Source: Gracilinanus agilis (lineage: Eukaryota). Taken from it: a stretch of 64,000 nt of DNA. Of the stretch, positions 2,751 through 29,800 are shown one piece after another. The DNA lies in contig NC_058131.1 of assembly GCF_016433145.1 (NCBI RefSeq), positions 669,461,418-669,525,417 of the forward strand, written 5' to 3'. The notes under the pieces are model-generated. The model saw nothing but the letters and a program-made list of their open reading frames with translations. It did no database searches and was not told the DNA's origin. How positions within the stretch are numbered: the stretch's first letter is position 1; the number at the start of each line of letters is the position of its first letter. Both the position numbers and the translations under genes were made by a program.

Positions 2751-2911
2751 ATGTCTGGGGAAAAGGTCCCCCCCAAAGAGATCAAAGCTGAGACGGATAA
2801 TTCAGATGTTTCCTGCCCTAGTGTCTCAGACCTGCAACAGCTCCTGCAAACAGGGAAGGTCTCCTGTAACCATGTGGATGAAGTCTGGCCTAACCTCTTC
2901 ATAGGAGATGC
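2751..2911 (+). CDS. DUSP13A: DUSP13A coding exon 1 (ends phase 2)
   Basis: ATG at 2751; encodes ...[13 protein letters not shown]; donor GC|GTGAGT. Confidence 0.93.
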
Positions 2912-5600
2912 GTGAGTGATAGCTTTGGGGCAGGAGGAAACCTGTTCTATTAGAAGTCTTGACAGCAAGAAGTAGAAGGAGACATACTGTGTTTGTAATT
3001 AGAATTGGCATGACTCTGTAGGGGGAAGGGGAAGACAGTTCTTAGGCACAACCATAAGGTAAGATGGTGAAAGCACTCAGTATTCCTAAAGGGGAAAAAA
3101 AAATACTGGGCTTAGAAACTAGGAGTTTTGTGTAGATTCCAGAAATCTCCCCAGAAACTCAGAACTGGTGACAAGCATATGGCAAGGAAGGCTTGGGGAA
3201 CAGAAGATGGAGAGAATAACAGGGATGTGGGTGAAAGACAAGATATAGAGTTAGCCTGGGCAATGTCTTGGAGGTTCCAAGAACCTGCAGGTATGCCATC
3301 TCAACTTATCTTGGTCCATTCTCTCTCTCCTCTTGCTCAGAATGACAGGAGGATGTCAACTGGGTTTTAGGGAACCCCAAGTCTGCCCTTGTCCCTTGAA
3401 AATTTGGCTTGGGGAAAGTCCCAGACTGACCTTGTTTCTGACTGAACAATAAACCTCTTGAAGTATTTAATGATCCCAGGTTAGGTGGGATTAGTAGATA
3501 AATAAGTACCTTTTTTGTCTTAGAAGTCCTTTCCCAGGTAACTCAGCTCCTGGCTGGAATCTTCCTTTTGTATCCATCATAAAGTCTCTCCTTGATAGTC
3601 TAGTCCTGGACTCCTCATTTCCTAGTAGCCATTGTAAAACTAATCAATCATATCTCTCTGTCCTTGGTTCCCCAAAGAGTATATAAGACCTCTATGTTCT
3701 ATTATTCTTTGGAGAATCACTTTTGGTGGTGCATTCTCCCAGAGTCCTAGAACTTTGGCTCTGTGTGGTATTAAGCACTTGACTCTGTGTGGCAGCCAAA
3801 TATTGAGCACTGTCTCTTATCCTGTTTAAAGATTTGGTCTTGCTGGCTACTTTAGTGGTTCTGTGTTTTTGAGTTGACAGGGACCTGGGGGGCAAGCTAA
3901 AAGGTAACTTGTAGATAAGATTAGAATTGATTCTTCTTCCTCAGTACCTGTTCCCTAGTTTCTTCCAGAAACCCTGGGGATTTGTGCTCTTCTGCATTGC
4001 CAACCAAAACTTCCTTCCAGATGTTTCCCATCCCTATATCCATAAGGTAACCAGCCTGGATCGATCAATCTACCAGTCACCCTGTCTGTCATTGTCTTCC
4101 TCCAGGGCCACAGCAAACAATCGCTTTGAGCTGTGGAAACTAGGCATCACTCATGTGCTGAATGCAGCCCATGGGGGGCTCTACTGCCAGGGGGGACCTG
4201 ACTTCTATGGCAGCTCTGTGAGCTATCTGGGGGTACCTGCCTACGATCTCCCTGACTTCAACATCAGTGCCTACTTTTCTTCCTCTGCTGATTTTATCCA
4301 CAGTGCCCTCTGCACGCCTGGGGGTACGAAATGGGTTGGGAATGGGTGGACGAGCTCTTCATTCATCTCTGCTATGCCAGTCCATCTCAGAAATGGACCC
4401 TTCATTTTCCCCTTTCTCTTCAATTAGGACCCGCCTACAGGTCTCCCCTGCCTTCCTATGATAGCCTAGAATCACTAGTTTACTCCCTTCAACCAAGGAA
4501 TATCAGGTGTTAAGAAATCCCCAACTATGATGAGACTCAGTCTTCACCCCAGATGTCTCCAGGTCTCCATTTTTTCACCCTAAAATAATTTCCCCATGAG
4601 CAAGCTGGAGTGGGAGAAAGGAAAGAAGAAGGTCAATGAAGGAACCTGGAGAAGGCAAAAAGGCAACTATTGGAAAGAGTTGGGGACAGTCTCTGCTCCT
4701 TCTAGAGGAGGTCTCAGTAGGAAGGCTTTTTTAGATTGATATGCAACTCTAGATAAGTCATCACCATTTTTTGAGCTTGTTTCCTTATGTGTACAATGGG
4801 ACCAGAGATAATAATGGCTTACTTTTGTACTGCCCTTTATACTTCTGAAAGCCTTTTCACATAGCCCATATTCATAATTGTAATTGCAGGGCAAGCCAAG
4901 TTATTCTACCCTTTTCAGAGATATGGAAAATGAGAATCATCCAATAGGTGCCAACAATCATATGGGTGACCTTTCATAGAACTGGGACAAGAATCAACAC
5001 AGGACCTTCCAATACTTTTGTACTGTCACTGTAAAAATACACACACACACACACACACACATATAGGAAAACCAACCAGAGTCAGGAACCTTGGATCCAA
5101 GTTCTACCCCTAACATATTAGTTATATGGCCATCAAGGATTCACTTCAATTCTGTTTCCTTATCTATAAAATGGGGATGATGAAAATCCTTGTATTACCT
5201 GCCCCACAGGATTATTGTAGAGAAAGTACTCCACAAATGTCATATCACTGTAGAAATATGAGCTGTTATTGCTCCCAGGGGGAGGTTCCTAGAGTAGTGA
5301 TTGAGTTTCTAGTAAGAATGAGAGAGCTCTGCCTCCCCTCTAGAACCTGGACTCTTCTCACCCCCTATTTCCCTCTTTCTTATTCCTCCAGCTAAGGTCC
5401 TAGTGCACTGTGTGGTGGGGGTCAGCCGATCAGCCACTCTGGTCTTGGCTTACCTCATGTTAAGACAAAGGCTAACCCTGATGCAGGCTGTGAGTTCTGT
5501 GAAACAACACCGTTGGATCTTCCCCAACTCTGGTTTCCTCAAGCAGCTCTGCCAGCTGGACAAGCAACTTCAGGAGTCAGGAGCAACAGTGAAGGACTGA
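2751..5600 (+). CDS. DUSP13A: Dual-specificity phosphatase 13A (MDSP/BEDP), 195 aa; join(2751..2911,4106..4323,5392..5600)
   Basis: Spliced frame MSGEKVPP...[67 protein letters not shown].../[23 protein letters not shown]...QESGATVKD*. Closely matches the known MDSP sequence. GT-AG introns, in-frame TAA upstream (2733-2735), 588 nt total. Confidence 0.95.
4106..4323 (+). CDS. DUSP13A: DUSP13A coding exon 2 (218 nt, phase 2-1)
   Basis: Acceptor TTCCTCCAG|G; encodes [10 protein letters not shown]...PAYDLPDF (general-acid Asp); donor GGGG|GTACGA. Confidence 0.95.
5392..5600 (+). CDS. DUSP13A: DUSP13A coding exon 3 (catalytic HCVVGVSRS)
   Basis: Acceptor TTCCTCCAG|CT; HCxxGxxR at 5406-5429; TGA at 5598-5600. 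Confidence 0.95.
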
Positions 5601-6948
5601 GAGAGCAGCCCCTTATTACTTTCTGGCTTCTTCTATAAGACAACATCCTCACCATCATTCTGCCCTTCAAAAGAGGATAGGACAGCAAACAGAAGAATTA
5701 TCACCAGAAAGGAGATTTCTGCCTTGGCAAGGCTAGGGTTGGTTTGGGGTGGGGAGAATTAGGAGCACCTTCTGTCTTTTTGCCAAGATTGGTCTCTCAT
5801 CCAGAAGAGGTTAGTATGGCTCCTGGTCCTAGCTGCCTCAGGGAGCTTAGTGATTTGAATGTACCTACTCTTCCTTGCCAACATGGGGGAAGCAAGGACA
5901 GTGGAAAGATTCCCAATTCAAGTAAATCAAGAGAAGAGTTGAGACTCTTGGGGACAGGAAGATAAGGAATGTTTAGAGGTCTAAGGTCTACTGTCTCCCC
6001 AGTCCACTAATCCCTCAAATTTCTTGTTTCTCAGCCTGAGAACACCTACATACTAGCCACCCCACTCTGTAAGCTACTGGTTCTCCATTCCTACCTAAAG
6101 AACTAGATAGTATTTGGCGGGAGGAAGAAAGAAGAGAAGAAGGAAGAGAATACAAGATGATATAGATTGGGGTTGGGGGAGATCATGAGTGAAATATGTG
6201 TGTGGGTAGAAGGCAAGGATAATGAAACTTGTAAATTGCTCAACTTTGTTTGGGCCAGGTTCTTCTTCTTTTCCCTAAAGGCAGCAAAGGGGTTAGGTTG
6301 AGGAAAGGTCTGAGGGAACCACCTGCAAGGTCCCAATGGTCATCAAATTCTAACTGTAAACTCCACTCCCCACGCCTGCCCCCAACCTTCTATCAAATCA
6401 TACCCAATACCCATCAAAACTAAGGTTTATCATCCAATCCCAGATTCCCTAACACCATTTTGTCTACCCTCTAACCTGCCAACAATGCCTTGGACACCCA
6501 TGCTAGAAGATGTAAGGGTGGGGGGGGGGGTGTTTTTGTATTGGAAAAGAGGTAGGACTATGTCTAGACTTCCCACATTGGAGGAGCAAGACTGATGTTA
6601 GTACTTCTGAGGCCTTCTTCCCTCCTATTCTTCTTCCTCCATTGTGTCCCTCTACCTAAGATTTCTGGCTTCAAACATATCTCCACATACTTCTCCAGGC
6701 ACATCAGGTTTTTCCCTCTCTCTTTCCCTTTCTTTCCAACAACCTCCAGATCTCACTCTTCTACTCCTCCCACCCCACTCTTGACCGCCCCACTCATGGC
6801 ACACATTCAGAGGAAACTCAGGCTCTGGCTCTGTGGGCAGGACTTTCAGGTTAAATTGTCTACTATCTCAGGTACTCTCTCAGAAATGGAGAGAAAGGAA
6901 GCTACACCTTATGAAATAACTACCTCAGGGTTTGATGAGCCTGTCTTT

Positions 6949-6954
6949 AATAAA
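6949..6954 (+). terminator. First canonical AATAAA after DUSP13A stop (candidate poly(A) signal; a second at 7348-7353)
   Basis: Hexamer seen; use as the actual site is inference. Confidence 0.4.
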
Positions 6955-7843
6955 TATCCAAGCTTCTCTAAACCAGAGAATAGTAGACTTTCTTGAGGTC
7001 ATCCTTTATAGCCAAACTCCTTTTCAATGTCAGATTACTTCTAGCCTAGACCAGGAGAGTCTCTCCTATTTTGAGATCTCTAGGAAAGGACATGTCTCAT
7101 ATTCCCTTTGGTCATTAAGTTTATCCTTAAGTCTATTCTGAGTCTCTCCTGTTGTCATTTAAATGCATAGCTTCTTGTTCGGTGTATAGGTGTATAATGT
7201 GTATAATAGAAACAGAAAATGGCCCATATCCCTGCTCCCTCTGAAACAGAAAGAAATTATTCTGTTACTCCTAATTGCCATTCTTCCTAAGTCTTTCCAC
7301 AGACCTTAGTGATGAACTCTGGGGTTTTCTTCCATCTCCAACTGCTAAATAAAAAGGGGATAGACTGTTTTAAGGTTCAGAGATCCAGTGACTGCAGCAG
7401 ACTCTAAATAGATCCATAGGGTAGCAGAGGTGGAGAAAGGGAAAGTTTTAAATAAGAAACAAATAGACTGTTCTTCCTGGAGGGACTATGAACTGCCATA
7501 TAGGTGACACCAGAGAGGCAGAATGGGGTGCTGGAATTAAAATCTGGAAAAGCTGGGTTTGAATTCTGCTTAGACATTTATTAGCTGTAGGCTTTTGGTC
7601 AAGTCAGTGAACTTTGCATCTTAGTTTCCTCATCTATAAACTGAAAGGGTTAAACCTGATGACCTCTAAGGTCCCTTCTACTTCTAAATGGATGATCCCT
7701 ATGAATTAGGGAACAAACTCTTTTTTGTCCAAGTAGTAGTTATTAAAGCCGGAATCTTAAACTTCCCTGGCCTTAATGAATCCTTAAATATCTTTATATT
7801 TTTATTATATCTAGGTGGTCATTGAACACCTAGAAAAGGGAAT

Positions 7844-8080
7844 TCTTCTGTTCAGTTGTTTCCAACTTTCTATGACCCCATTTAGAATTTTCTTAGCAAA
7901 GATGCTAGAGCGTTTTGCCATTTCCTTTTCCAGATCACTTTATATATGAGGAAACTGAGGCAAACAGAGTTAAGTGACTTGCTCTGAATCACAGGGAGCT
8001 AGTAAGTATCCAAAGTTGGATTTGAACTTAAGTCTTCCTGATTTCAGGGCCAGTACTCTATCCCTTGTGCCACCTAGCTG
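7844..8080 (-). mobile_element. MAR1-like marsupial SINE
   Basis: GACCCCATTT...TTAGCAAAGAT...GCCATTTCCTT, GAGGAAACTGAGGCAAACAGAGTTAAGTGACTTG motifs. Confidence 0.75.
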
Positions 8081-8119
8081 TCCTCACAAAGGGAACAGAT
8101 GATTATAAAAAGCCAGAGT

Positions 8120-8835
8120 AGCTTTGTCAAGAACAGGTCAGGCTAGACTAACCTCATTTCCTCTTTTGACAAGATTATTAAACTTGTACTTGAGGGGAAT
8201 TCTGTGGGAACAGCTTATCTTGATTTTAGCAAAGCTTTTGATAACATATCTCCTACTATTTTTATGGAGAAGACAAAGAGATATGGATTAGCTGATAAAA
8301 TAGATTGCTTCACAATGTTGGATGGCTGGATTCAAAGAATAGCTATTATAGTTGAATGTCAACTTGACAAGAAGCCTCTATAGTACCCGAGGGATGTATA
8401 CTTGGCCTCAGACTTTTAATATTTTTTTTAACAATGATTCACATCTGTAAAGGCTCACCAAATTTGCTGAAAACACAAAACTGAGAAAAATAGCCAACAT
8501 ACTGACTCAATCAACTGATGACTCAGAATTTTGCTGAATCTAAAAAGATGAAATTCAATCACAGACATTTCTTAGCTGCCTGACCCCTGGGCAAGGCATT
8601 TAACCCCAATGGCCCTTATCCCTCTTCTGCATTGGAACTAATACTTAGTATTGATTGCAAGACTGAGGGTAAGGGAAAGAAAAGGAAAAAAGAAAAAGGA
8701 AGAATTTCAGTCATGGGACAAGTCTCTCCTTTGGACACAAAGTGTCAACTTCACAAGTACAAAATGGGAGAGGCAAAGTTAAACAGTACTTGTTTTGAGA
8801 AAGATCTAGGGGTTTTAGTAGATGTGTAAACTCGA
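8120..8835 (+). mobile_element. L3/CR1 LINE reverse-transcriptase fragment (5' part, degenerate)
   Basis: From 8123 translates FVKNRSG*TNLISSFDKIIKLVLEGNSVGTAYLDFSKAFD, the CR1 RT signature. Confidence 0.85.
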
Positions 8836-8840
8836 TAGTG

Positions 8841-9598
8841 TGTGAAGTGGAAATTGAGGGGACTTTGAAAATATCAAAGTACACCTTCTTAAATCACTAT
8901 TTAAAAATATGACCAGGGAAATACATCACTTAAAATATAATGCTTTATTGAGAGAGAACTAGAGAAATGGGGGGGATTGTCTCAAGTCACTGACCCAAGA
9001 CAGATCACCCTAACCCCTAAAGATTTACAGAGAAAACGCAGGGAACTGTGTCAAGTCATTAACCCAAGACAACTACCTAAAAATTCACCGGAAAATCCCT
9101 TATTTATAGGAGAATCCAGATGTAACCAAGCCTCCCAGAAGGGATTATAACATTTTTGCAATGGTTGGAGACAGACTGTTGAATATTACAATGGACACAT
9201 TGGAGCTAATTAACATCTTCAAGAAATTGGGGAGTAGCTTTATAGTGGGCACATTCAAGCATTTTAGCATTTGAAAGAAATGATCAGGAAGTTGGAGACC
9301 AATAGAGAATTCCCGGATGGGACTGGATTGTCTGAGAGGAGCTGATGTCAAGTCTTTGGGCTTGACCATCTGGTAGAAGCCTCCAATATAATGGAAGAGA
9401 CTTCTACACAAAAGGATACTAGGAGATTGGTACTAAAGACTTGATCTTTGGGTACTTTCAGGATCAAAGACCGGAATCAGCCTAGGACAAATTCCCTTAA
9501 GGCTGGAAAACCTTTGTAAGGATGGAGGTAGGGTCTTGAAGGAAGAAATGGATAGATATTAATAACTTGAGAATAACACACTAATATCTCATTGCACA
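8841..9598 (-). mobile_element. Probable solo LTR inserted in the L3 element
   Basis: TG...CA-type ends; on the - strand TATAAATA (9101-9108) followed by AATAAA (8944-8949); interrupts otherwise collinear L3 sequence. No clear TSD found, so ends are approximate. Confidence 0.6.
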
Positions 9599-9614
9599 CA
9601 ATTGGAAAGAGCAG

Positions 9615-10100
9615 TGTGATGCAGCAACAAAGAAAACTAATATCATTCTGGGTTGCAGTAAGAGGGGAACAGTTTCCAGAAATAAGGAGAGAATAGTCTT
9701 CCATACTTTCTTCTTATCAGTCCTCATCTGATATATGTGTTCAATTCTGAATGCAAACCTGAGGAAGAATGTTGAAAAGTTAGTGTCGGAGAGGGCAATG
9801 GTGGTGACCAAGTGTGGCAAAAAACCATGAATCTGTGTCATATGAGGTTTGGTTAGAGGAACTAGAGAGGGATGTTTGGCCTGGAGAAGAGAAGACTTTA
9901 GGAAGAACATGATTTGTGCTTTCAAATATTTGAAGGCCTGTTTTGTGAAGGATCCTGAAGGACAAGAAGCCAATTGAGGATTGATGTCAGGAACTTCCAA
10001 ACAATAAAAACTGTCCCAGACTGGAATGGGTCATTTCTAAGGGTAGTAGGCTTTCCCTCCCTGTAGGTCTTCTTCAAGTGCAGGCCAGATGACTATTTGG
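9615..10100 (+). mobile_element. L3/CR1 LINE 3' ORF2 fragment
   Basis: CAGTGTGATGCAGCA...TGTGTTCAATTCTG...GGCCTGGAGAAGAGAAGACT...TTCAAATATTTGAAGG corresponds to the CR1 C-terminal (LEKRRL...FKYLKG) region. Confidence 0.8.
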
Positions 10101-11267
10101 TCAAATTTTAGTCCAGATTACTTTCATGTTGGGGTTGTACCAGATGACTAATGAGGTCCCTTCTAAGTCTCAACTTCTGTAGTTCTATGTCCTAAGTCTG
10201 CTTCTTGAGGAAGTCATTCAGACTTAGATTAAATCTCTGGGAATGACTTTCCTTAGAGGTCATCAAATTCAATTCCTTTTTCAGAAAAGGGAACTAAGGC
10301 CCAAATTAGTCAAATGACTTGCCCCATGTCACAGCTAGTCAGCAGCAAAGCAAGATCCATATTTCTTGATTCCTAGTACAATCCTCTTTCCACTTTATTA
10401 CGTGCTGGGTTCCTCTCTTCTGTAAAATGAGCTAGCAACTGACCTTTCCCCAACTGTGTGGGAGGTCAATCAATTAATCAAACAAGCAGGAAACTCAGGA
10501 AGTAGAGGCTAAAAACCTGAAATTGTTCCCTGGAGAATTCTAACAGACCAATGCTAGGGCTCTCCCTTGGGCTATGACTTAATCCTGTTGTGGACTTAGG
10601 TAAAAAGAGCCAAGATGACTCAACTAAACGATAAGTGGTTATGGCACAACATTATCTTTTTTTTTTTTTTTTTAATTTTTTCCTCACCCCCAAAAAAGGC
10701 TACCAGAGGTAGATGACCTACAAATAGACTTTTGCTTTTATATCATGTTCATTTCTGAACAGGCCCCTACCCTTTTTTTTCTACCTTTGTAACAACAACA
10801 ATTACAACACAGAGTTCAACAAATCAATATAACAACTGTGATTGACAGCATAAAGCAACATTCAACATCCACAATGTTCAACTTCTTCTGTGAAAGGAAG
10901 TTGTTTAACCTTATTTTTCCCATTGTTCCTATTGAAGACTCAAGATATGAAGGGAGTGCTTCTCAGGAAGCTAAATCTTTGGGTCCCTTGGTGGGGAATG
11001 GGTCAGGGGCTACCATCCAACAACCTGTAGGTGAGATCTTTAAGAAAACCTAGGCTTTCCCCCCAATATTCCTCCCCTTGGCACCACCCACACCCTCATA
11101 TAAGTAGGTTAGTATTTCCCTAGAGAAAGTATTTCCCCATTAACTTTCTCTTGCTGATTCTACTTCTTCTGCACTTATTTCCTACCACCTGTCATCTTTT
11201 ATTGTTCTCTGTCTTCAGGGTTCCTTTGGACTGCACCCTGAGTAGAGTGCTCTCCAGTGGGGGTCAA

Positions 11268-11401
11268 ATGGATGGGAAGATGTTTCACAAGATCAGATAT
11301 AAGACACCAGAGTTGAATGACCTGCAGCGACTCCTCTTGACTCAAAGTGGGTCTCGGAATCATATGGACGAAGTCTGGCCTAACATCTACGTGGGAGATT
11401 T
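11268..11401 (+). CDS. Third paralog coding exon 1 (exon probably starts at acceptor 11219)
   Basis: [11 protein letters not shown] motif; donor TT|GTAAGA at 11402. Confidence 0.88.
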
Positions 11402-12807
11402 GTAAGATCTCTCTGCCAATCATTCTCCCTCAGTCTTTCCTGCCTGCCCTGCCTGATTTCCTATCCTGCCCCAAATCGCACATCCTAGAACCCAGCTTGG
11501 GGGTTTGAACCCCAGAGGAATCTGGGGCTTCTCCTGGAGAGGCCATAGAGGAGGGAATATTAAACTAGCTGGGTGTTTCTACCCATTCTGGTCCCTAGAG
11601 AAGGAGCTGTGGCACCGCAGAACCAGAGATGGATTGTAGGGGTGGGGACTAGAGTTGGGTTCTGGCTTAGAATTGAGATTGGGTTTAGGGAAGTATGTTT
11701 GGGTTTTGGTTAAGATTAGGAGGTCATTTCAATTTAGCATGTGGTTTAGGGTAAGAGTTAGGGTTGGGGATTATTGAGGTTGAGGCTGAGTCAGGCTCCC
11801 AGTTATCAGATGCCCCTGGCCATCTGCCCTTGTAGCAATTTCCTGTCTCTTGGGTTTCTTCCCCACTACAGATGGGCTGCCAGGAATCTCAAAATACTAC
11901 AGAGCCTAAGAATCACTCACATCCTCAATGCTGCCCATGGTGGATTAGGCGTATCCACAGGACCAGGTTATTATCGTCACATACCTATGACCTACCTTGG
12001 GATAGAGGCTTTTGATGACTGTGCCTTTGACCTCAGTGTCTTTTTCCATGAGGCAGCAAACTTCATCCAGGGAGCACTAGAGACCCCAGAAGGTAAGAGG
12101 GAGGCAGGTGGCAGGGACTTTCTCTTTTGCCCAAGCCCTATAAGCACTGCACCCTACCCCATTCTCAGGGCTATGCAAAAATGAACAGAAGTGAGTCTGG
12201 AAGTCCAGTGCCCTGGGTCTAGGGGTTTGGTGCGATTTAATACCTATGGTTGCCCCCTGATTTTCTGTTGCATTGGTTGTAAGTTTCCAGCCTGTAAAAT
12301 GGACAGGAGACTCTTCTTTCATTGTCCTTTCCTTTATACCCACTTGGGACTGTTCTTGTGTCCCCAGTTCCATGGCATAATATATTGGATTTGGTGTCAG
12401 GAAGACCCAAGTTCAAATCCAGCCTTAGATACATCCTAGCTGTGTGACTGTGGACAAGTTACCTAATCTTTCTTGGCCTCAGTTCCTCATCTGTAAAATG
12501 AAACTTGGACTCGGTGGCCCTTGGGGTCCCTTCTACATCTAAATCCCTGATTTTATGATTCTTCCCAGGGAAGGTGCTTGTCCACTGTGCCATGGGGCTT
12601 AGTCGCTCTGCTACCCTGGTACTTGCCTTCCTGATGCTCCGGAAGCATCTGACCTTGGTGGAAGCCTTGAAGACAGTAAGTGTCCATCGAAACATCTGCC
12701 CCAATCTGGGGTTCCTCTCTCAGCTGCGTAACTTGGACCTCCAACTTAGCCAGGAACAACATAATAGGGACAGGGAGAGTCTGATGGCACCTACCACTCT
12801 GCACTGA
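11268..12807 (+). CDS. Unnamed third DUSP13/DUSP29-family phosphatase, 197 aa; join(11268..11401,11872..12092,12569..12807)
   Basis: [197 protein letters not shown]. 594 nt, no stops or frameshifts, canonical GT-AG sites, catalytic Cys/Arg and general-acid Asp intact. The start codon choice (11268 vs the next Met or an upstream exon) is uncertain. Confidence 0.9.
11872..12092 (+). CDS. Third paralog coding exon 2 (221 nt, phase 2-1)
   Basis: Acceptor CCCACTACAG|A; [10 protein letters not shown]; general-acid Asp codon 12014-12016; donor GAAG|GTAAGA. Confidence 0.92.
12371..12560 (+). mobile_element. MIR/MAR-type SINE in intron 2 of the third paralog, abutting the 3' splice site
   Basis: GAAGACCCAAGTTCAAATCC, CTAGCTGTGTGAC, CTCAGTTCCTCATCTGTAAAATG, GTCCCTTCTACATCTAAATCC...ATGATTC tail. 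Confidence 0.75.
12569..12807 (+). CDS. Third paralog coding exon 3 (catalytic HCAMGLSRS)
   Basis: Acceptor TTCTTCCCAG|GG; motif at 12583-12609; TGA at 12805-12807. Confidence 0.92.
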
Positions 12808-12808
12808 A

Positions 12809-12814
12809 AATAAA
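12809..12814 (+). terminator. AATAAA poly(A) signal immediately after the third paralog stop
   Basis: TGAAAATAAA seen at 12805-12814. Confidence 0.6.
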
Positions 12815-14299
12815 ATGGTCATTTAAAAAAATAGCTGCAGCTTTATTGACATTTCACTAAGTTCAAAGGTTCTGCCAATGGTGTTATCCTCTGTTAAGAA
12901 AGGATCAGAAGGTTGAGGATCTAGAAGCCATGAGTTTGTCCTCTCAAGTCAGTATCTGTCATATCAAGACTGTGCCTGTGAAGACTGAAATTTTCAGAGA
13001 TCAAGATGGCAGAGAGACACCATGAAGTGGAGACAGGATAGAAGAACTTGGTCAAGGTTTCCTGGGGCTTTTCCAAAGGTCCTAATATGGACTGGAGATG
13101 CGAAGAGCTCTGAGCAAATTCAGGTCACAAATTGATTTCTGTTCAGGGTCTAGGAAATATGCAGTGGTCATTCCTCTGTATACCCTTCCCAACAGTCGCT
13201 TTTCTGAACTCTCTAGGCTCCAAATAGTGCCTATCCTCTACCTGGAACTAATTATGGGCTTTTAAAATAGATTCTTACAGAAAAGACATCTAATTTCTTC
13301 AAACTATAGGCCAAGGAACTGGACTTCATTTCCAGGCAAAATCCCCACAGGTTCCTTGTTACTCTGTCCATTGGTCTGGCATCCTGGGGGGTAAACTCTG
13401 TCAACTCTGTGAAGAGGGATGGACATGGAATACGTATTTATAGAGTCCCTCCTATGGACTAGGCACTGTGCTAAGTGCTTAAAAAATATCTCATTTGAAG
13501 AGCATTTGAACTTCTCTTTCTATTCCTTTCATCGATTTGTTCCTTCCCCACCTTTCTTTCTGGAATAGCCAAGGCTAGTGGGGATGGGGGAAAAGAGAGG
13601 ACTTGTAAGAGTCCAGGAATGGGCTAGATATCTGAGTGGTCAAGAACAGGTGGCCATGGGCAACTAGATGGCTTAGTAGATATAGACTAGAGACAAAAGG
13701 TCCTAGGTTTAAATCTGGCTTCTGATAGCTCCAAGCTGAGCAAGTCGCTTAACCCCATTTGCCTAGCCTTTATCTTCTTTTGCCTTGCAACTAATACTTT
13801 TTATTGATTCTATTAAAAAATAAACAAACAGGTGGCCTATTGGCAAGCCCAGTTTGCCTTCCCTTCTCTCTCATGCCTCCCATCCTAAGTGGGGCAAGAC
13901 CATAATCATGGGCCTTCTCCCATTTTGCCTGCTACCCCTTATTTCTACATAATAATAAAGGCTTGAAAAGAATACCCACACATTTTTAAATCCTCTTGGC
14001 CAAGGATTAGTCTCCTACAGCTTTCCCTGGCTCTTCCTCCCACTTCCCAACAATCATTGACACATACCATATATATAGCCCAGGCTATGACTGGACCAGC
14101 CATCTCCTTAGCATGTGGAGTGCTGGTGTTGGGTCAGAGGGGGTGGAGGCAGGGGTCTGGTGCCAGGACTGCCAGACTAGGCTCAGTCTCGTGCTCTGCC
14201 ATGCCATCCCCTCGGCACCTTCCCCTCCTGGGAATGAACGGGACTGATGGCCCTGGGTAGGGTAAGAAGAGGAGGGCGGAAGGGGGGAAGCGGATCATG

Positions 14300-14428
14300 G
14301 TTTATAATTAAACACAAATTCAAAATAGAAGCAGCCTCAACAGAGCAGAGACAGGCAGTTGGGAACCTGCCTATCGGGAGACCGTAGCCAGTGCCTGGAA
14401 CCAGGCTAGGCCCTCTCCACAGGTGAGT
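14300..14428 (+). promoter_or_regulatory. Candidate TATA-like promoter and non-coding 5' exon ending in a consensus donor
   Basis: TTTATAATTAAA near 14300, E-box CAGTTG near 14357, CAG|GTGAGT at 14422/14423. Confidence 0.4.
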
Positions 14429-15502
14429 GTCACCCCCCTCCTCAGCCCATTCTCAGAATGATCAGAAGCCCTTTTGGGGCATAGGCTTGGGGGTGGCAGG
14501 GGCACACATGGGTGGTGGTAGCTGGGTGTGTGGGAAGAGTTAGAGCCATCTGAGCCACCCGGAGTCAGAGGGAGAGACAGACAGACAGGGAGTCAGAAAC
14601 AAAGAAAACTGACAGTCAAATGCAGAATTGTGGCCCTCCTCATCCCAGCCCAGACAAGACAACCCCCACCTGTGTATTTATAAGAGGTTGGTAAAAGAGT
14701 AATTAATTATACCTGATAAGTAACCTGAGAGTGTAGTAGAGTGGTTAGGGAGACGGTCTGGAGTGGGGGAAAACAAAGATCTATACACAGCTGGTTGTCT
14801 TTGTCATCCACATTTTATTTTATACATTTTAAAATATTATTCTGAAGAGTCCACGGGCTTCATCCGATCCTGGCAAAGGGGTCAAGCACGAGCGCACACA
14901 CAAGACAGTTAAGAATCCTCTGCATAGAAAAAATCTATAGTAAGAGATTATGGGTTCAAATCCCAACGCTGCCACTTACTGCCTTTACATCATTTCAATT
15001 CTCTGGGCCTTGGATTATTCATCCGTGAAATAAGGGGAGACGTTCACAGGCTACTGGCCGGAGAGCTGCCCTAAAACTCGAAGCACTCCAGATGCCTCTG
15101 AAGACTCTGAGTTAGAGAATTTTGCCAAAGAAATCCCCAATCCGAGCCCTTTTCCCTTCCGCCACTCAAAACCCAGGGACAAGACTGGCTGACCCCTAAG
15201 GTCCCTTCCACCTCTGAATCTACCATTTTATAATATGTGTGAGACTTGGATTGTGGTCCGGATACTTGTGAGCTGAGTGACCCTGGGAGAGTGCCTTGAC
15301 TCCTGAGTCTGCGTGGACAGAGTTAAGTCTGCTACTCACCCGCTCCTCTGTTCTGTTCTCAGTGTTTTGGGGGCCCAGAGAGGAAGGGAGTTTCTCAAAT
15401 CAAAGAAAGGTGGAGACACATAATGGGATTGAGGGAGGGCAGAAAAGACGGGGTCTTCCAGCTGCTTGGGGCCAGCCAGCTAAGCCTGGACGGAAGGCAG
15501 CA

Positions 15503-20700: not shown

Positions 20701-20888
20701 ATGGATTCACTGCAGAGACAGGACCTGCGGAGGCCCAAGATCCATGGGGCAACCCGAGTTAGCACCCAGAACCTCGCCCCCTACCAGACACCCACTTTGG
20801 CCTACCTGCAGCGCCTGCTGTGGATTCGAAGGGCCACCTCAATGAGCCACATCAATGAGGTCTGGCCCAACCTCTACCTGGGAGACGC
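20701..20888 (+). CDS. DUSP13B: DUSP13B coding exon 1 (acceptor CCAG|G ATG at 20700)
   Basis: MDSLQ start; donor GC|GTAAGC. Confidence 0.95.
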
Positions 20889-23800
20889 GTAAGCCCGCCT
20901 TCCCCAAATTCACTCTGATGGGAGGGAGATTCACATCTGAGGAAGCAAACAGGGATGGACTTGGGCTTCCTCAGGGAGGGCTTCTTCCTGAGGAAGAGTC
21001 TTAAGACTCAGCTCTGTAGTTATCTCTTCTTGGTAGGGGAGGAGAGAATGAGGGAAAACACCCAACTGGGTAAAGTGGGGCAGATGGAGGGCTCTCCAAG
21101 AAACCAACCAAAGCCCTAAGTACATCTCTCTCCTCAGGGCAAAGGGCTCCAGGCTCTGAAAGATCCATTTGGGTGAATTCTCTGGACTACTTTGTCCTGA
21201 CAGCCTCCCGACTATGGGGATGGGTCCCCAGGAGAAGAATTTGTCTGAATCCCAGGAACCCCATTGATGTCTGGGCTTGAGGGCTAGATAGATGACTTAA
21301 GTTAGGTGCTGGAGATACAGAGACAAAAAGGACCCCATTCCTATGTATAACTTGCATTCTACTATTCTACCAAACCTTGGTATGGTGGGTAGAGAGCTGG
21401 CCTTGGAGCCAGGGAGATTTGAATTCAAATCCTGCCTCTGACACATATTGACCAGGTAGGTGACCCTGAGCAAGTCACTTAATTCTGCACACCTTGAGGG
21501 ACTCTCTAAGACAAAGAGAAGGTGCTAATTTGGATAGCTAGGAGTTTCTTATCTTCTACCAATTAAATTACAGCTCTAATATCCCATTTTATAGACAGGG
21601 AAACTAAGTTAACTGGTTTACTTAAAGGTAGCTAGGTCGCACAATGAATAGATTGCTTTTCAGACCTGAATTCAAATCCAGTCTCAAGATAACTTACTAG
21701 CTGTGTGGCCTTGGGCAAATCACTTAACTTCTGTCTGCTTTAATTTCCTCAATTGTAAAATGGGGATAATAAGGACACCTCCCTCCCAAGGTCATTGGGA
21801 GGATTATTGAGATAAGGATTAAATGAGAGAACATTTTGTAAAGTGCTTAGTGCAATGCCTCTGATATAGAAGGTGCTTAATACATGCTCATTTTCTTCTC
21901 TTCTTTGTCCATGATCACACAGCCAGATCATTCAGAGCCAGGCTAAGAAGCCAGATCTCGTGTGTACAAATCCAGCACCCTGTCCTCTACACCTCCCCAA
22001 CTCTGAAGATGACTTGGCACTTCTCTCACCTTGCCAAGGCACCCCCTCATTGGCGTCTCTGGCCTCCTTCCCCACAGCCCATGCTAGGTGCTGACTGCCA
22101 GCAGGAACACTCCATGACTTTCCTTCCTTGTTCCTCTTCCAGATACGCAGCCCGGGATAAGAGCAAACTGTGCCAGCTGGGTGTCACCCACATTGTGAAT
22201 GTGGCTGCTGGCAGGTTCCACGTTGACACGGGCACCAAATTCTACCGAGGGATGCCCGTGGATTATTATGGGATTGAGGCTGATGACAATCCCTTCTTTG
22301 ACCTTAGCATTTACTTTCTGCCTGCAGCAAGATACATCAGAACAGCTCTCAGCAATCAAGGTGAGCTTCCTTCTCCTCCTTTCCTCCTACCCCTTTTCCT
22401 TTTCTGGTAGAGGAGATATATTTGAGAAGAGGAAGAGGATATGTGGAGGGAGGAAACCCAGAAGCCAACCAGCACAACCAACTCTCAAGCCCTGGACTTA
22501 GACCCTTCCAGAACAGTCAGTTGGGCTCCTTCTGAGATGGTCAGGCAAGTGGGCAAAACTCTCAGAAGATCATGCCCCTTTCTCCTCTCTTCTCCACTCC
22601 ATCCCAGAACAGAACCAATACTCTGTTATTCCCCATTTGGGAAGGTTTAGAGTGAAGATTAAAGACTCAGGGCTGAAAGGGGCCTCAAGGTAATCTGGTC
22701 AAATCCCTTCAATGTCCATCTGAAGAAACCAAAGCTCAGAGGACTTCAATGACTTGTGCAGCATCATACCAAGAGACAGTTTGATCTTAGGTCCTTTGAC
22801 TCCAAATCATTGTTCTTTGCATTATTACATCATGCTCCCCTTAGCCCCCTCATTTTTCATTTGGGGAAACTGAGACCCAAAGTCATTTTCCTAAGGTCAC
22901 ATAAATAGGATCATATATTCAAAGCTGGCAAAAACCTTAGAGGTCATCTAGTCCAACCTTCCTCATTTTATAGTTGAGGAAACTCTGGACTTTAAGTGAT
23001 TTACCAAAGGTCATAGTATCAGAGATGGGATCTGAACCCAGGTTTTCTGACTCAAAAGTCAGAACTTTTCCTACTGTACCACTCTTAAAAAAGTAAATTC
23101 CCTTTCCCAATGCAAATCAGCACTTGTTCTACATTTTACCTGTGTTAGAATGTAACTGGGATGGGAAGTCCTGGGTTCAAATATGGCCTCAGACATTTCA
23201 TAGTTGTGTAACCCTAAGCAAACCACTTAACCCTGTTTTGCCTAGCCCTTTGCCCTTCTATCTTAGAGTTGTTACTAAGACAGAAAGGTTGTTTTTTTTT
23301 TTTTTTTTTGTCTTTACTAGGGTCACTGAGGGAAAACTGGAGCTAGGCTAAAAGGTGTAAGTTATGACTTAGACTAGGTAGAACCTAGTCTGACCCTTAT
23401 ACCTAGACAGCAAATGGGGCTCCTGAGAAGTCTCTGGAAGAAAGCTTCATGAACAGTAGGTACTAGATGATGGGTGTGGGATTGTCATGGGTGGCCAGTT
23501 CCACATAGAGGAGTCTAGGATTTCTTGGTCTCAGCAGGGTCTTGCTCAACTCAAGGCTATGGTTGGGAGATACATACCTTGGGTATCTCTACAATCATCT
23601 ATGCACAGGAAACCATCAAGGACATCAAGGGTAAGTAAAAGAGAAAAGGGCTACCCAGAGATGAAAAGAGAGTGGAGCAGCCCTTTTTTGCAATGGGATG
23701 TGTTATGGTTATCTGTATTTGAACTTCAGGTTTGGGGTTGTTGTTTTAATGCCTGTTGTCAAGGCTGACTCCTTGGGAAACAGCATGGAGCAGTAGAACA

Positions 23801-25259
23801 ATCACTGCCTTTGGCATCAGAGGACATAAATTCTAATCTCACTTCTGCCACTTACTATTTTTTATTATATTTTAAAATTTAATTTAATATTTACCAATTG
23901 CACATAATAACAAATTTCCATACAAGTTTTCCTAAGTTATAGTTGAACTTATCTTCTTCCCTCTCTTCTTCCACCTCCTGGTGCTGGCAGGAGATTCATT
24001 CTAGGTTATACATGCATTATCATGAAAAAAATATTTCCATATTGTCCATTTTTGTAGGCCGCTTACTATTTGTGAGATCTCAAATGACTCACTTAACTTC
24101 TCAGGGTCTCAAATCTCCTCTGTAAGGTGAGGGCATTGCCCTAGATGACTTCTGGGGTGCCTTCTAGCTCTATAGGTTAAATACTGGGGTCAGGACAAAT
24201 TTCCATAGACTATGATATGCTGCTATTTTTTTTTTATTCCTCACCAGATAGACCCTAGATTTGAAGCTAAAAGGGAATCTAGAGGTCATTTAATCCAATT
24301 CACCCATTGTACAGTTAAGGAAACTCCCTGGGTCAGAGTGCAGTTGTCTGTGAGAGGACCTTCCTCTCCTTTCTTCCAAACTTCTACCTATCACTTTAAT
24401 TGATTCAAAGTTCCCTCTACTCTAGGGTTAACTCTTAAGTCCTAGTTTGCCTGAAGGAATGAGGCTTGTCCAGCAAGGGATGAACTCAAGATTGGGACAG
24501 ACTTCCATTGTGATGAAGTCTAGTCAGAACCCCTCTTCTCCTTAGATTCCTGTTGCTCAACCTTTGAAGATCCTTGTATCACTGGGGCTATTCACAGTAG
24601 TGCAGTCTAAATCAATTTCTGCTTCTCACTGGACACCAGAACCTTGGAGATGACCAGGATCGAACAAAGAGAAATCTTCCCAACTAGCAGGCACTGACCA
24701 GTCCTCTGAGGGTCTAAGTCTTCTCAAGCAGAAGAGCTCAGAGCTGACTTTCCCAGTTCCTTAGAGGTCTTAGAAGAAGAGGGATGGTGTCTTTCCTTAG
24801 ATGCTCTCTCTTATGATTTCCCCCTCTTGAATCTAGACAGGAAGAAGACTCTCCATGCAGTTCCTGACTGATATCAGGAGTTAGCTTTACATTTCAGTGC
24901 CCAGGAACAAAGCTCCAGTTACCCACCTTAGTGAACATCTTTGTTTTTAATCTTTAAAGGACCTGGTTAGGGTCAGATCCACTGAGTGTTCAGCTTTCTT
25001 AGTGGTCCTGTGGTTGTGGTTGTGATTGTGATCATATCTTTTGTTTCTCCCTGCAGGCCGTGTATTTGTGCACTGTGCCATGGGGGTCAGCCGGTCTGCC
25101 ACACTTGTCCTGGCTTACCTCATGATCTGTGAAAATATGACCCTGGTAGAGGCCATTCAGACTGTGCAGACCCACCGAGACATTTGCCCCAACTCAGGTT
25201 TCCTCAGGCAGCTCCAGGTCCTGGACAGTCGGCTGGGGCGGGACATGGGGAGACTCTGA
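20701..25259 (+). CDS. DUSP13B: Dual-specificity phosphatase 13B (TMDP/SKRP4), 202 aa; join(20701..20888,22143..22360,25057..25259)
   Basis: [16 protein letters not shown]...[43 protein letters not shown]...[11 protein letters not shown].../[67 protein letters not shown]. Closely matches known TMDP. 609 nt, GT-AG introns. Confidence 0.96.
22143..22360 (+). CDS. DUSP13B: DUSP13B coding exon 2 (218 nt, phase 2-1)
   Basis: Acceptor CTCTTCCAG|A; EADDN general-acid loop; donor CAAG|GTGAGC. Confidence 0.96.
25057..25259 (+). CDS. DUSP13B: DUSP13B coding exon 3 (HCAMGVSRS)
   Basis: Acceptor CTCCCTGCAG|GC; TGA at 25257-25259. Confidence 0.96.
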
Positions 25260-25492
25260 CTCGTCAGGTAGCTGGGAATAGAGACCCGTTAGGGGGTCTC
25301 TTCCTTCTACTTGCATTGAAGAAGACTGGCAACCTTCACTGTTTACAAATGGACCCTGAGATGTAAATATCAAACGTAGGGGCATCAGATGGCAGGGGTG
25401 GGGAAAGGTTGAGAGTTGACGTTTAACAGGTGAATTTGCTCAACATGTTAAAAAAAGATTCTTTATGAGTAGAAAGTTTGGTCTCAATCTAT

Positions 25493-25498
25493 AATAAA
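25493..25498 (+). terminator. DUSP13B poly(A) signal AATAAA
   Basis: First AATAAA, ~235 nt after the stop. Confidence 0.7.
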
Positions 25499-26636
25499 GA
25501 ATTAATTCATCAGACCAAAAATGGACTTGTTCCTTGTATTTATAAGGTCCGACCAAATATGTAAGAAATACCCCAAGTTTCTCCCTTTCTCTTTGCTCCT
25601 CGTCTCTTTTTTATTGCCTCACTTAAAGGCCTGCCTAAGACTGGCCCAAATCAATACATTTTGGACCAGGCTTAGATTTTCAGTGCTTTACCATCCCATC
25701 CTTTGCCAGATGTTGCTGTTTTCCTCTGTAGAGCATCTCTTGGGTTCCTCCCTCCTCCTACATGTTTCTCACTAAGTTCTTGGGTTCCCTTTCTCTCGGA
25801 CGCTCATTAACTCCTTCTTACAGGCCTCCTGGCCCCCAGCTATAGCTCTCTTTCCTTTATTATATAGCCTTGCTCCCTAACTATTGTCATGGTTGGCAAC
25901 CCATGGCCACAAACCAGCTAGGGTCATTCCCACAAGGACCTAAAGAGGATGTGGGACTTAAGTTGCGGTAAGAATAGTGGCGCCATGAATAGAAGTGGGG
26001 ATATCAGGTGGGATTGAGCCATTTCTCAATAAGTGGCAAGCTCCCTAAAGGAAAGGAATGGTTTTACTCCTTCCTTAGTATGTCCTATAGATGTTTGGTG
26101 TTCCATGGGCCGCCATTAGACCCTCAGCTTACTAGCCAGTGTTTTCCTATATTCTAGAGAATGCCCAGAATACTGTGGCCCAGGTTGCCAATGAGGCATG
26201 CATAAATTTCCATGCTCTTTTCCATGCCATGTAAAATGTATATGTTTATTGTATATATAAATATATATAAATCACATATATAAAATATATGTATATATTT
26301 ATTCTGTGTATATATGAGATTTTATGATCCTCTTCTTTTTCTAGGTAGTTATTATTCCTGGAGGGCAGAACAGGGATAAGGAATGAATCTGTGATTTCAT
26401 TGACACAGGGAACCCCCAGATGAGGAAGCTCCCTTTACCAATGTAGGCATCCTCTGTAAATTTTGAGTCTTAGTTGGTTAGAGATAATAACTTCTCCATT
26501 TTAGACATAAGAAGAGGCTTGCCCAGGGTCTCACAGCTAGGATAGGTAAGACTTGAACTCCAGTTCTTCTTGCTCCACTGTTTGCTTTCTTTCCTTTATG
26601 CCTCATTGCCTTTCTGTTAGAAGTCAAGTGATTTTT

Positions 26637-26836
26637 TTTACACTGTTTTTTTTTTTATTTTAAACCCTTAACTTCTGTGTATTGACTTATAGGTGGAAGA
26701 GTGGTAAGGGTAGGCAATGGGGGTCAAGTGACTTGCCCAGGGTCACACAGCTGGGAAGTGTCTGAGGCCAGATTTGAACCTAGGACCTCCCGTCTCTAGG
26801 CTTGGCTCTCAATCCACTGAGCTACCCAGCTGCCCC
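26637..26836 (-). mobile_element. Young opossum-type SINE with 16-bp TSD
   Basis: Full head-to-tail copy; AAGTCAAGTGATTTTT at 26621-26636 and 26838-26853. Confidence 0.93.
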
Positions 26837-29800
26837 TAAGTCAAGTGATTTTTAATAAAATAAGACTGTAGTAATAAAATTATGGAAGACCTATTCTTGG
26901 GAGCACCTAAGGGATGAATATTCAAGGAGAGGAAGAGGAACTAGGCAGAGCTGGTAATTCAAACTTGCAATACTTACTGAGCTTTCTGGGCATCTCTGTT
27001 CCATAAATGAAAGAGCAGAGAATTAGAGCTCTCTTTCAGCCTAGGAGCTAGAATTTGGTGGGTAGGCCAAAAGAAGGCCACGTTTTAAAATCAGAGACAA
27101 GAGGTGTACATTTTAGCCATTAGAGGGAGCTGACATGATACAGATGTCCTCCAGGGAATGATAATTCCCACAGTCCAGGCAGAGGAACTATGGCCACATG
27201 TCATGGGGAAGAATCCATTCTCAGGGCTAGCAATCACTAATGTACTGCTCTCCCAGATTCTAGCTCTTTTCCTCCAATGTGGGGAAGGTATTTTTTGGCC
27301 CTGAGGGCTTTTCATCTCTCTCTGCTTCCTAATCACACCCAAAACCCACCTCAAGGCACCAAATCTGGATTTCATTAGCTCCTGAACTAGTCTGTTTCTT
27401 TGGAATCAACAATCCTTTGTGCCCAAACCCTCATGATCCATCCCTTTCCCTCCTCTATTACCACTGTGCTTGGTCCAGTTCTAACATTCCCCTCCTCCCT
27501 TCTTTCTTCTGCAACTCTCTGACAGTTTCTTAGGCAGAGGAATTTTTGTACAAGAGGCAGGAAAGAAGTTGGGGGTGGAAAAGGGGGGTGAAGGGAAAGC
27601 AGAGATCCTGGAACTCTGGGTGTAGAGACAGGGAAAGAGCTCACCCTTTCAAATGATCTGGCAGTTTACAATCCAATAAACATTTATTAACATGAATGAT
27701 AATAACTAGTATTTGCAAACTCTTTTACATGTTATCCCATTTGGTTGTTATGACAATCCTGGGAGCAAGGTACTATTATTACCCCCATTTTACAGGTGAA
27801 GGAGTCAGGTACGGAGCCCGATAATAAAAAATAATTTTTTGAGTAAAGAAATAAACATTTAAGTTTTAAGTCTTTCATACTGCCAAAGTCAGAGGCCACT
27901 TGCAGAGCCTCTTAAAAAGCCCCTAATGAACCAAAGTAACTTCTTTCCCCAATAAACTGCCCCCTCCCCCAACAACTGATAGGGAATGAATTGTCTAACA
28001 GGGATTATCATTAGAGTTGGAAAAAATCTTAGAGGTCATAGAGTCCAACCCTTTATCTTACAGATAAAAAGTTGAGAAAGACTAAATGACTTTCAGGGTC
28101 ACAAAAATAGTAAATGCCTAATGGGGGATTCTGACTGGATTGCCAGGGATAAATTGCCCCCAAGATGGCATCCTCTCCTGACACCAAGAGAGACGAGGCC
28201 AGAGGGGAGAAGATAAGGTGGCCATCACGGGATTACCATTCCAGGCATCCTTCCAGGTTCATTAAGACTCAGAGACAGGAGAGAGGAAGGAGACAAAGGG
28301 AAGGGGCCATAGCTGTCCCAGGATGGTGCAAAATGTCCTGCGCCTCTCCTTTCCACTCAGCCCTTCCACCGCCACATCTGTGGACCACGACTCACAATTT
28401 TCCAAATTCTTCTGACACAGTGTTCCAAGGGACATCTGTTTTCACTCTGGCCGCTTTTTAACACTCCGCTCTAGGTAGCTACAGCTCGTTTTCATTCCAG
28501 CTCTTCCTCTCTACGTGGTAGGCTACATCCTATTAACAAAGAGGAGAGTGTGGCAGCAGGATCCTCTGGTTACCATTTGTGTTTTTAGTCTCATTGATCT
28601 ATTTTTAGACCATGATTGGTATTCCTGGAGATCCACACCCTTCAGCTTGTCTATTCCAACCTTTCCAAGGCAAACAGAGACTCACCCAAACCTGCAGACA
28701 TTTTTTCCTGGGACTTGGGGATGCAGCTTTTGTGGTCCAAGGCTAACAGGAAGACAATACTTTAGGATAAGGGATGAGCTCTTAGGCGCTTGATAACTCA
28801 ATCTCCCTTTTAGGTTGCCCTTAGGGCAAAGAAGCAGAAACTCAGAAAAAGAAGAACCCCATCAGAAATACAGACAAAGTCATCTCTGAAAGACCTCTGA
28901 CTGGGGACCTGAACTTTATAGTGCCTATATTAAATGATCCTGAAATAACTCTAGATAGGTGCAATGAGCCAGAGAGAGATGAAAAATTCTTTAAGGGAGG
29001 GTTGATCGCTAAGACTGAACCCATTTCATGTGAACTCAAGAGTCTTAGGAGGATCTTGATTACAGGTTACAAAGGGAAGGTGCATCACAGCCCAGGACAC
29101 CAGAAATCTGGTTGGGAGTGGGAAGGGGAAAAGTAAAACCTGTAGACTCATCTCCTTTCGCTGCCTCCTTTCTCACTGGCACACAGAAGAGGGCATGTAG
29201 GGACACATCATCCTCAAAGCAAGTTGTCATTCCGGAAACACACACCACACAGCAGTAGCCTTCCTAAGCCTCAGAGGCTCACTTGGGTCACAACCAAATT
29301 AAGAACAACCCAGACTGCTTAAAGATTTTTAAACTGGCCAGTCTGCTCAAATTCACTCGACTAGGAACAAGTCCTTCTCCTCTTCCAATATTCATAGCAA
29401 TATCCCTGCCAAGTGCTGCAATAATGGTAGCACAATGTAGCCCAGTCACTTCAATAATTAGTCCATCAACCACTGGCATCTTTGCTACAGCTAGGTGGTA
29501 CAGAGGAAAGAATCAGGAAAATTGGAGTTCAAATATAACCTCAGACGCTCACAAACTGGACCTGTCTGCCTCAATTTTCTCAGTGGTAAAATGAGGACAA
29601 TACTAGCACCTACCTCTCTGACTGGTAAGGATCAAAAGAGATAATATTTGTTAAGAGCTTAACTCAGTGCCTGGCATGTAGTAAACACAATAAATATGTG
29701 TTCTCTCTTTCCTTCTCTCCACAATCTCTGGCAATGATGGTAACGGTTCCTCTTTTTAAAAAAATTAAATTATTTTTAATTAAAAAAAAAAACAAACATC

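Follow-up and report, generated by a model that had tools for sequence, protein, structure and literature searches.

What is the third dual-specificity phosphatase (DSP) gene that lies between DUSP13A and DUSP13B in a marsupial, and where did it come from? The human and mouse DUSP13 genes have two products, MDSP (DUSP13A) and TMDP (DUSP13B), and vertebrate phosphatase catalogues rest on these two species and list two DUSP13 products. We analysed a 64,000-nucleotide stretch of the Gracilinanus agilis genome (contig NC_058131.1, forward-strand positions 669,461,418 to 669,525,417; hereafter the window, numbered from its first nucleotide). Positions 11219-12814 of its + strand carry a DUSP13-type gene of three exons and 197 amino acids (aa) that is distinct from both of its neighbours. 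The explanation that we regard, as a whole, as highly probable is that this third gene encodes a predicted active, small cytosolic 'atypical' cysteine-based DSP and that it is the mammalian ortholog of the sauropsid 'DUSP13(B)-like' gene, a lineage apart from TMDP/DUSP13B since before the amniotes.

An intact third gene and its predicted enzyme

Joining 11268-11401, 11872-12092 and 12569-12807 yields an open reading frame (ORF) of 197 aa, and both introns have GT/AG boundaries (Table 1). The conceptual protein is 100% identical to NCBI XP_044514982.1, named 'dual specificity protein phosphatase 13-like [Gracilinanus agilis]', which means that the NCBI pipeline arrived at these junctions independently. 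The P-loop HCAMGLSRS occupies residues 124-132 (12583-12609) with Cys125 and Arg131 intact. The general acid Asp93 (codon 12014-12016) is likewise intact within the EAFDD motif that begins at residue 90, and an ICPN motif follows at residue 161, 3' of the P-loop in exon 3. A general-acid Asp loop about 30 residues upstream of the catalytic Cys is part of the DSP signature.

Residues 41-173 matched the Pfam DSPc profile (PF00782) at 85.2 bits (cut-off 33.5). The third protein retained all 28 columns that are invariant in an alignment of 40 family sequences, including D93, H124, C125, G128, S130 and R131. An AlphaFold2 model built on the same alignment (predicted local distance difference test (pLDDT) score 88.4, predicted template modelling (TM) score 0.85) superimposed on 2gwo and 2pq5, two crystal structures of TMDP, with an r.m.s. 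deviation of 1.0 Å and TM scores of 0.95-0.96. After TMDP, the structural matches in the PDB were DUSP29, DUSP26, DUSP13A and VHR. The profile, the HCxxGxxR(S/T) P-loop, the general-acid Asp and the DSP fold place the protein in the DSP catalytic-domain family. Judged from the intact residues, the fold and established family knowledge, catalysis would follow the usual DSP scheme, in which Cys125 of the HCxxGxxR loop attacks the phosphate, Arg131 binds the phosphate and Asp93 serves as the general acid.

A tblastn search with the third protein identified exactly nine DSP exons in the 64 kb, three per gene, all on the + strand and with identical intron phases. No additional DSP copy or relic emerged when the six-frame translation of the 64 kb was searched with profiles, and weak tblastn matches at 28349-28487 (E = 4) did not recur there. 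The upstream gene is a true DUSP13A, which fell in the 13A clade in our trees, and the downstream gene is a true DUSP13B/TMDP, with 75-96% identity to mammalian TMDP/DUSP13B. Over the whole protein the third gene is 54% identical to DUSP13A and 53% to DUSP13B; over exon 3 the values are 61.5% and 63.1%. The initial annotation, made from the sequence of the window, had proposed a complete third gene between DUSP13A and DUSP13B, and this is borne out by the ORF, the GT/AG junctions, the AATAAA, the motifs and the neighbours. Its hand-counted exon-3 identities (67% to 13B and 65% to 13A) were a little high, although its description of the gene as roughly equidistant holds.

Intact models of the third gene are present in 12 marsupial species (Gracilinanus and 11 others) from both American and Australian lineages. 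Orthologs in Monodelphis, Notamacropus, Petaurus, Trichosurus, Sminthopsis, Sarcophilus, Antechinus, Macrotis, Vombatus and Phascolarctos are 79-90% identical to it. In the wallaby, brushtail possum and dunnart loci, SAMD8 (- strand), 13A, the third gene and 13B follow one another in the same order. Pairwise comparison of exactly spliced coding sequences from four marsupials gave ratios of non-synonymous to synonymous substitution rates (dN/dS) of 0.14-0.28 by the Nei-Gojobori (NG86) method and 0.20-0.43 by maximum likelihood (ML). DUSP13A at the same loci gave 0.19-0.22 and 0.24-0.29, respectively. The upper end of the NG86 range for the third gene came from pairs with Gracilinanus (0.24-0.28), while Australian species among themselves gave 0.14-0.18. 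The deficit of non-synonymous changes was significant in Fisher tests on the synonymous and non-synonymous counts (p 1e-6 to 1e-12). These data support purifying selection on the third gene at a dN/dS like that of DUSP13A. The initial annotation had proposed such selection and had named dN/dS near 1 or disabling mutations in related marsupials as signs of a pseudogene; dN/dS is well below 1, and the ORF is open in all 12 species.

We also searched for the words of exon 3 in RNA and DNA runs, a search in which the kinds of run are guesses and from whose words splicing cannot be judged. In Gracilinanus agilis itself, two small runs contained all exon-3 words. Many small runs of a related species, guessed to be RNA, held 55% of the words, as did the large DNA runs of that same species.

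The N-terminus is variable among marsupials and has low pLDDT in the model. The first ATG in Gracilinanus is at 11268 (MDGKM...), and the Met that is common with Australian species is at 11280 (MFHK...). Dasyurid isoforms X1 (238-241 aa) include an extra A-rich upstream coding exon, spliced to the acceptor that matches 11219; this exon lies at 10001-10072 of the Sminthopsis locus and corresponds to about 11012-11219 of the window. Gracilinanus has a stop in the frame of the dasyurid-type extension, and in Monodelphis the start Met is elsewhere, so the N-terminus and 5' exon usage are not conserved among marsupials. Intron 2 of the window gene contains a SINE/MIR-like repeat (ggaagacccaagttcaaatccagcc...ctcagttcctcatctgtaaaatg) at 12380-12500.

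Phylogenetic position and age of the third gene

Outside marsupials, the third protein was most similar to roughly a hundred proteins of birds and reptiles, labelled 'DS13B' or '13B-like', with 59-68% identity. The protein homology search retrieved no eutherian protein close to it other than 13A-13B read-through fusions, and no monotreme protein was among the matches listed. For phylogenetic analysis the family was sampled as a library of 50%-identity representatives, with single domains cut from fused multi-domain models and 20 representatives named. The main tree was computed with IQ-TREE under LG+C20 from 47 rows, and its outgroup consisted of sequences taken as DUSP29-type, assigned by clustering and not by name. 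In this tree the marsupial third genes formed a clade with 100/100 support that joined the sauropsid clade at 89/98. 13A formed a separate clade at 96/90 (96-100 across trees). Mammalian TMDP grouped at 95/88 with a caecilian gene, zebrafish dusp13b, a frog gene and the second domain of a sturgeon protein; the grouping of TMDP with the caecilian gene was supported at 94-96 in both trees. Removal of six long-branch rows left the topology unchanged, with the marsupial plus sauropsid node then at 82/89, and a newt gene and sturgeon domain 1 fell on the third-gene side at 91/90. Approximately unbiased (AU) tests rejected a clade of the third gene with mammalian 13B (p = 0.0011 and 0.0014) and were less decisive against a clade of the sauropsid genes with mammalian 13B (p = 0.029). 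Thus, the ML trees and the AU tests place the third gene outside the DUSP13B/TMDP orthology group, and the separate 13A clade places it outside the DUSP13A/MDSP group. The phylogeny that the initial annotation had suggested as a check agrees with its view of an old paralog rather than a recent copy, in that the gene groups with sauropsid sequences and a clade with mammalian DUSP13B is rejected at p = 0.001; its guess that sauropsids might also have kept the gene is matched by the single marsupial-sauropsid clade.

The sauropsid genes, including those of turkey (P0106), hummingbird (P0100), snake (P0107) and tuatara (P0109), are the closest relatives of the third gene outside marsupials. They share with it GDxWAAR, EAFDD, FFxEAANFI, ICPNxGFLSQLR and the conserved 10-residue motif, and differ in carrying names that imply an orthology with TMDP which the tree does not support. 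The third gene belongs with this 'DUSP13B-like' group by its clade; a position downstream of a 13A-type gene is only partly shown for the group. The third gene had earlier been read as a mosaic of TMDP-like and MDSP/DUSP29-like motifs. The motifs are indeed present, but as the sauropsid orthologs have the same ones, the mixture is retained ancestral sequence and not a mosaic.

Gene order in other vertebrates bears on the age of this lineage. Bird models P0007-P0099 ('DS13B phosphatase, partial', about 270-295 aa) proved to be chimeras of two adjacent genes, with an N-terminal 13A-type exon 2 (VPAHDLPSFDIS) that is 64% identical to opossum 13A, followed by a third-gene-type ORF. Their '13B' name is therefore misleading, and they place a 13A-type gene directly upstream of the third-gene type in birds. 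The 10 kb flanking the turkey and snake genes on each side contained no further DSP exon, of 13A or 13B. A 41.9-kb contig of the sturgeon Acipenser sinensis (L008) has, all on the same strand and in this order, a 13A-like fragment, a gene of third-gene type, a gene of 13B type and another DSP gene. An assembly-duplicated 13B-type exon 3 (33654-33875) adjoins N gaps in this contig, and the NCBI protein for the locus is one fused model flagged UNVERIFIED_CONTAM. The array is followed on the opposite strand by a KAT6B-like gene; KAT6B is also the known neighbour of DUSP13 in human. The sturgeon synteny suggests that the third gene and 13B split before the bony vertebrates, and given this arrangement the paralog is probably older than amniotes. 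Both marsupials and sauropsids have retained the third gene.

Probable loss in eutherians and a proposed origin of the TMDP-L1 signal peptide

The elephant and European hare loci, which we reached via their DUSP13B models, contain no intact third gene between 13A and 13B. On the + strand of these intervals, a profile hidden Markov model (HMM) of the third-gene clade matched the exon-2 acid loop at 9679-9750 (E = 0.04) and the exon-3 P-loop and helix at about 10085-10186 (E = 0.0025) in elephant, and the exon-3 segment in hare (E = 3e-5). DNA alignment of opossum 12585-12680 with elephant 10084-10179 scored 54 (shuffles 22.9 ± 2.3), and that of opossum exon 3 with hare 7224-7303 scored 51 (shuffles 22.1 ± 2.5); the exon-2 relic of elephant scored 37-41 (shuffles 21 ± 2). 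When aligned with exon 3 of different genes, the relics scored 36-56 with the marsupial third-gene orthologs (n = 4), 17-25 with 13A and 17-39 with 13B. A polypyrimidine/AG acceptor precedes the exon-3 relic at no more than 2 nt from the marsupial position. The exon-2 relic was found in elephant only and not in hare, and no exon-1 relic was detectable in either species, where scores were at shuffle level. The relic P-loop has its Cys, Arg and Ser replaced (e.g. SATGLCHFAT) and so is unable to encode a phosphatase. These findings support the view that the third gene is dead in eutherians, of which a decayed relic would be all that remains in elephant and hare. The initial annotation had supposed loss or degradation in eutherians and pointed to the interval between 13A and 13B as the place to look for a remnant; one is present there in both species.

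The remnant appears to have acquired a new use. Human DUSP13 encodes MDSP in exons 1-3 and TMDP in exons 7-9, with more exons between them (PMC11274236, 2024). An intronic promoter just upstream of the starting exon of the isoform TMDP-L1 is activated by p53, and the N-terminus of TMDP-L1, MGLCHFATLALILLVLLEALAQAD, is a predicted signal peptide of a protein that is partly secreted (PMC11274236). We found that this signal peptide aligns without gaps with the opossum third protein, with 10 of 24 positions identical and its start Met opposite the Met of HCAMG. In elephant, the relic lies inside the first coding exon (10001-10294) of an annotated long DUSP13B isoform. The same segment is present in the original frame in 17 of 91 eutherian 13B isoforms having N-terminal extensions, all of them predicted, from at least ten orders: primates, lagomorphs, rodents, bats, carnivores, cetaceans, camelids, perissodactyls, sirenians and proboscideans.

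We propose that exon 3 of the dead paralog was exapted as the middle exon of the eutherian locus. The exon-3 remnant, together with its old splice acceptor, would persist within the complex DUSP13 locus as one of its internal exons, and the former P-loop and the helix next to it would have turned into the hydrophobic N-terminus (MGLCHFATLALILLVLL...) that serves as the TMDP-L1 signal peptide (PMC11274236). It seems likely, if less so than the orthology itself, that the signal peptide was exapted in this way from the exon of the dead paralog, with the original frame and acceptor and with the primate start at the Met of HCxMG; that the 'non-coding' middle exons of the two-ORF locus are the wreck of the third gene; and that the vertebrate ancestor had an array of 13A, third gene, 13B and DUSP29.

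A different N-terminal extension of eutherian isoforms, 'QGQVLVPLTPQLCRV', was considered as a frame-shifted P-loop relic and dropped as a coincidence, since it maps to elephant 14218-14556, after the exon-3 relic and just upstream of TMDP exon 1. This elephant segment ('MRGKA...SYWLRGPG...') provides long DUSP13B isoforms with a second alternative 5' coding region, about 800 bp before TMDP exon 1. Dugong, orca and hare models conserve it, and it bears no relation to the relic.

Other histories can be set against the orthology of the marsupial and sauropsid genes, and several observations weigh against that orthology. Support for the marsupial plus sauropsid node is moderate (82-89 bootstrap), the marsupial stem branch is long (0.95 changes per site) so that long-branch effects are not fully excluded, and with nothing within 10 kb in turkey and snake the sauropsid synteny rests on the fused bird models. 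The long stem, along with an exon structure and intron phases common to all three genes, is what one would see if the third gene had arisen recently within marsupials, by tandem duplication of DUSP13B or DUSP13A, and its fast evolution mimicked equidistance. That origin is close to refuted and we give it hardly any credence: AU tests reject the required clade with mammalian 13B (p = 0.0011 and 0.0014), identity to the sauropsid genes is 62-68% against only 53-54% to the gene's own neighbours, and a relic at the same position in elephant and hare indicates that the gene predates the marsupial-eutherian split. A duplication in the amniote or mammalian stem that gave rise to both the third gene and TMDP, with the sauropsid gene a pre-duplication co-ortholog and the fast-evolving TMDP misleading the tree, is a more serious competitor, although still an unlikely one. 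It would account for the single DSP gene within 10 kb either side in turkey and snake, for the less than maximal support of the marsupial plus sauropsid node, and for a sauropsid exon 3 that is about equally similar to the third gene and TMDP. It does not fit the grouping of TMDP with the caecilian gene (94-96), zebrafish dusp13b and sturgeon domain 2 rather than with sauropsids, nor the presence of amphibian and sturgeon members on both sides of the split, nor the KAT6B-adjacent sturgeon locus in which the third-gene type is followed by the 13B type; the AU test also disfavours the clade of sauropsid genes and mammalian 13B that it implies (p = 0.029).

Whether the opossum gene functions and whether the relic is genuine are weighed in the same way. 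The splice junctions of the third gene are predicted ones, which weighs against a firm claim of function. The ORF could be intact while the gene is silent or becoming a pseudogene in Gracilinanus, existing only as a gene model, as the higher dN/dS of Gracilinanus pairs (0.24-0.28, against 0.14-0.18 for Australian pairs) and the differing start codon positions among marsupials would allow. We consider this very unlikely given an ORF that is open in 12 American and Australian species, a dN/dS that equals the DUSP13A value and is well under 1, the retention of every invariant family residue, and the presence in a relative's small runs, guessed to be RNA, of all exon-3 words that its genome holds. 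The relic match spans only about 100 nt (35-45 codons), part of it hydrophobic, and the link to human TMDP-L1 would depend on a peptide quoted from a paper together with predicted isoforms of other eutherians. The likeness might be a chance one between a hydrophobic signal-peptide exon and the helix after the P-loop, the gene itself having been lost without trace. The leucine-rich character of the short protein match, its modest HMM scores (5-18 bits, only about 2 bits over the 13B profile) and the failure to detect exon 1 anywhere or exon 2 outside elephant speak for chance. Chance is nevertheless improbable, as the DNA alignments lie 11-13 standard deviations over shuffles in two distant eutherians, the strand, interval and order (exon 2, then exon 3) are as expected, and the match begins at a conserved polypyrimidine/AG acceptor no more than 2 nt from the marsupial one. 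Moreover, the score is far better against marsupial third-gene exon 3 than against 13A or 13B exon 3, and non-hydrophobic flanks match too (A-M/T-G-L before the helix; K-x-V and R-x-x-x-P after it).

Known relatives, annotation and the surrounding array

DUSP13B/TMDP is a testis- and skeletal-muscle-specific DSP (PDB 2gwo, 2pq5), and DUSP13A/MDSP is a muscle-restricted DSP (PDB 5xjv). TMDP resembles the third gene in fold (1.0 Å, 56% identity), in the HCAMG variant of the P-loop, in ICPN, and in its three exons, intron phases and locus. In contrast, it is a separate gene 8 kb downstream, 53% identical, in a clade that excludes the third gene. MDSP is the adjoining family member, has ITHxLNAAHGG in common with the third gene and is 54% identical to it, whereas it has its own HCVVGVSRS loop, VPAxDLPDF acid loop and clade (96-100 support). 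DUSP29 (DUPD1) and DUSP26 belong to the same atypical-DSP subfamily, with about 50% identity, and fall outside the DUSP13 clades in the trees. The signal peptide of human TMDP-L1 aligns with the P-loop and helix segment, and the equivalent eutherian exon is the exon-3 relic; the eutherian segment differs in lying outside the phosphatase domain, with Cys, Arg and Ser replaced, and in being spliced as an N-terminal extension of the TMDP domain.

The third gene belongs to a known enzyme family and already has gene models, though it has no name. A literature search of incomplete coverage found no paper that names or characterises this paralog or the sauropsid genes, and 'DUSP13C' occurred in it only as part of a primer name. 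The initial annotation had allowed for an automated model without a named gene, and XP_044514982.1 is such a model. Marsupials and sauropsids would thus have a third, apparently functional DUSP13-type enzyme that is unnamed and inconsistently labelled, its marsupial orthologs appearing as 13-like, 13B-like, 13A isoform X1 or DUPD1-like. The 'DUSP13B' label of bird and reptile genes would then assign them to the wrong ortholog, and studies of chicken or lizard 'DUSP13B' would concern a gene other than TMDP. The dead paralog also offers a possible origin for two eutherian puzzles, the extra exons between the MDSP and TMDP frames and the unexpected signal peptide of p53-induced TMDP-L1. The significance lies in a correction of the gene family and its annotation together with a story of exaptation, and not in a new kind of system.

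Table 1. Coordinates of the DUSP13-type genes in the window and in the sturgeon contig.
Sequence	Feature	Position	Strand	Details
Window	Third gene, exon 1	11219..11401	+	acceptor AG at 11218/11219; donor GT at 11402; ends after codon position 2
Window	Third gene, exon 2	11872..12092	+	AG before 11872; GT at 12093; residues 45-119; conserved 10-residue motif at residue 60; EAFDD loop
Window	Third gene, exon 3, coding part	12569..12807	+	AG before 12569; residues 119-197; TGA stop 12805-12807
Window	Predicted polyA signal AATAAA	12809..12814	+	two bases past the third-gene stop; predicted from the letters only
Window	DUSP13A/MDSP ortholog, upstream neighbour	2751..5600	+	coding sequence 2751-2911, 4106-4323, 5392-5600; 195 aa
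Window	DUSP13B/TMDP ortholog, downstream neighbour	20701..25259	+	coding sequence 20701-20888, 22143-22360, 25057-25259; 202 aa
Sturgeon L008	Third-gene type	5052-9657
Sturgeon L008	13B type	24738-28650
Sturgeon L008	Further DSP gene	35984-37962

Downstream of the array, the window contains an undetermined stretch of 186 N at 34281-34466. Among eutherian models, several 248-aa isoforms (P0131, P0194 and others) have DUSP13A exon 1 spliced straight onto the full TMDP ORF. The ferret model P0005 (344 aa) is another that crosses units, and others read through both genes; cross-unit splicing in the DUSP13 array is common in annotation.

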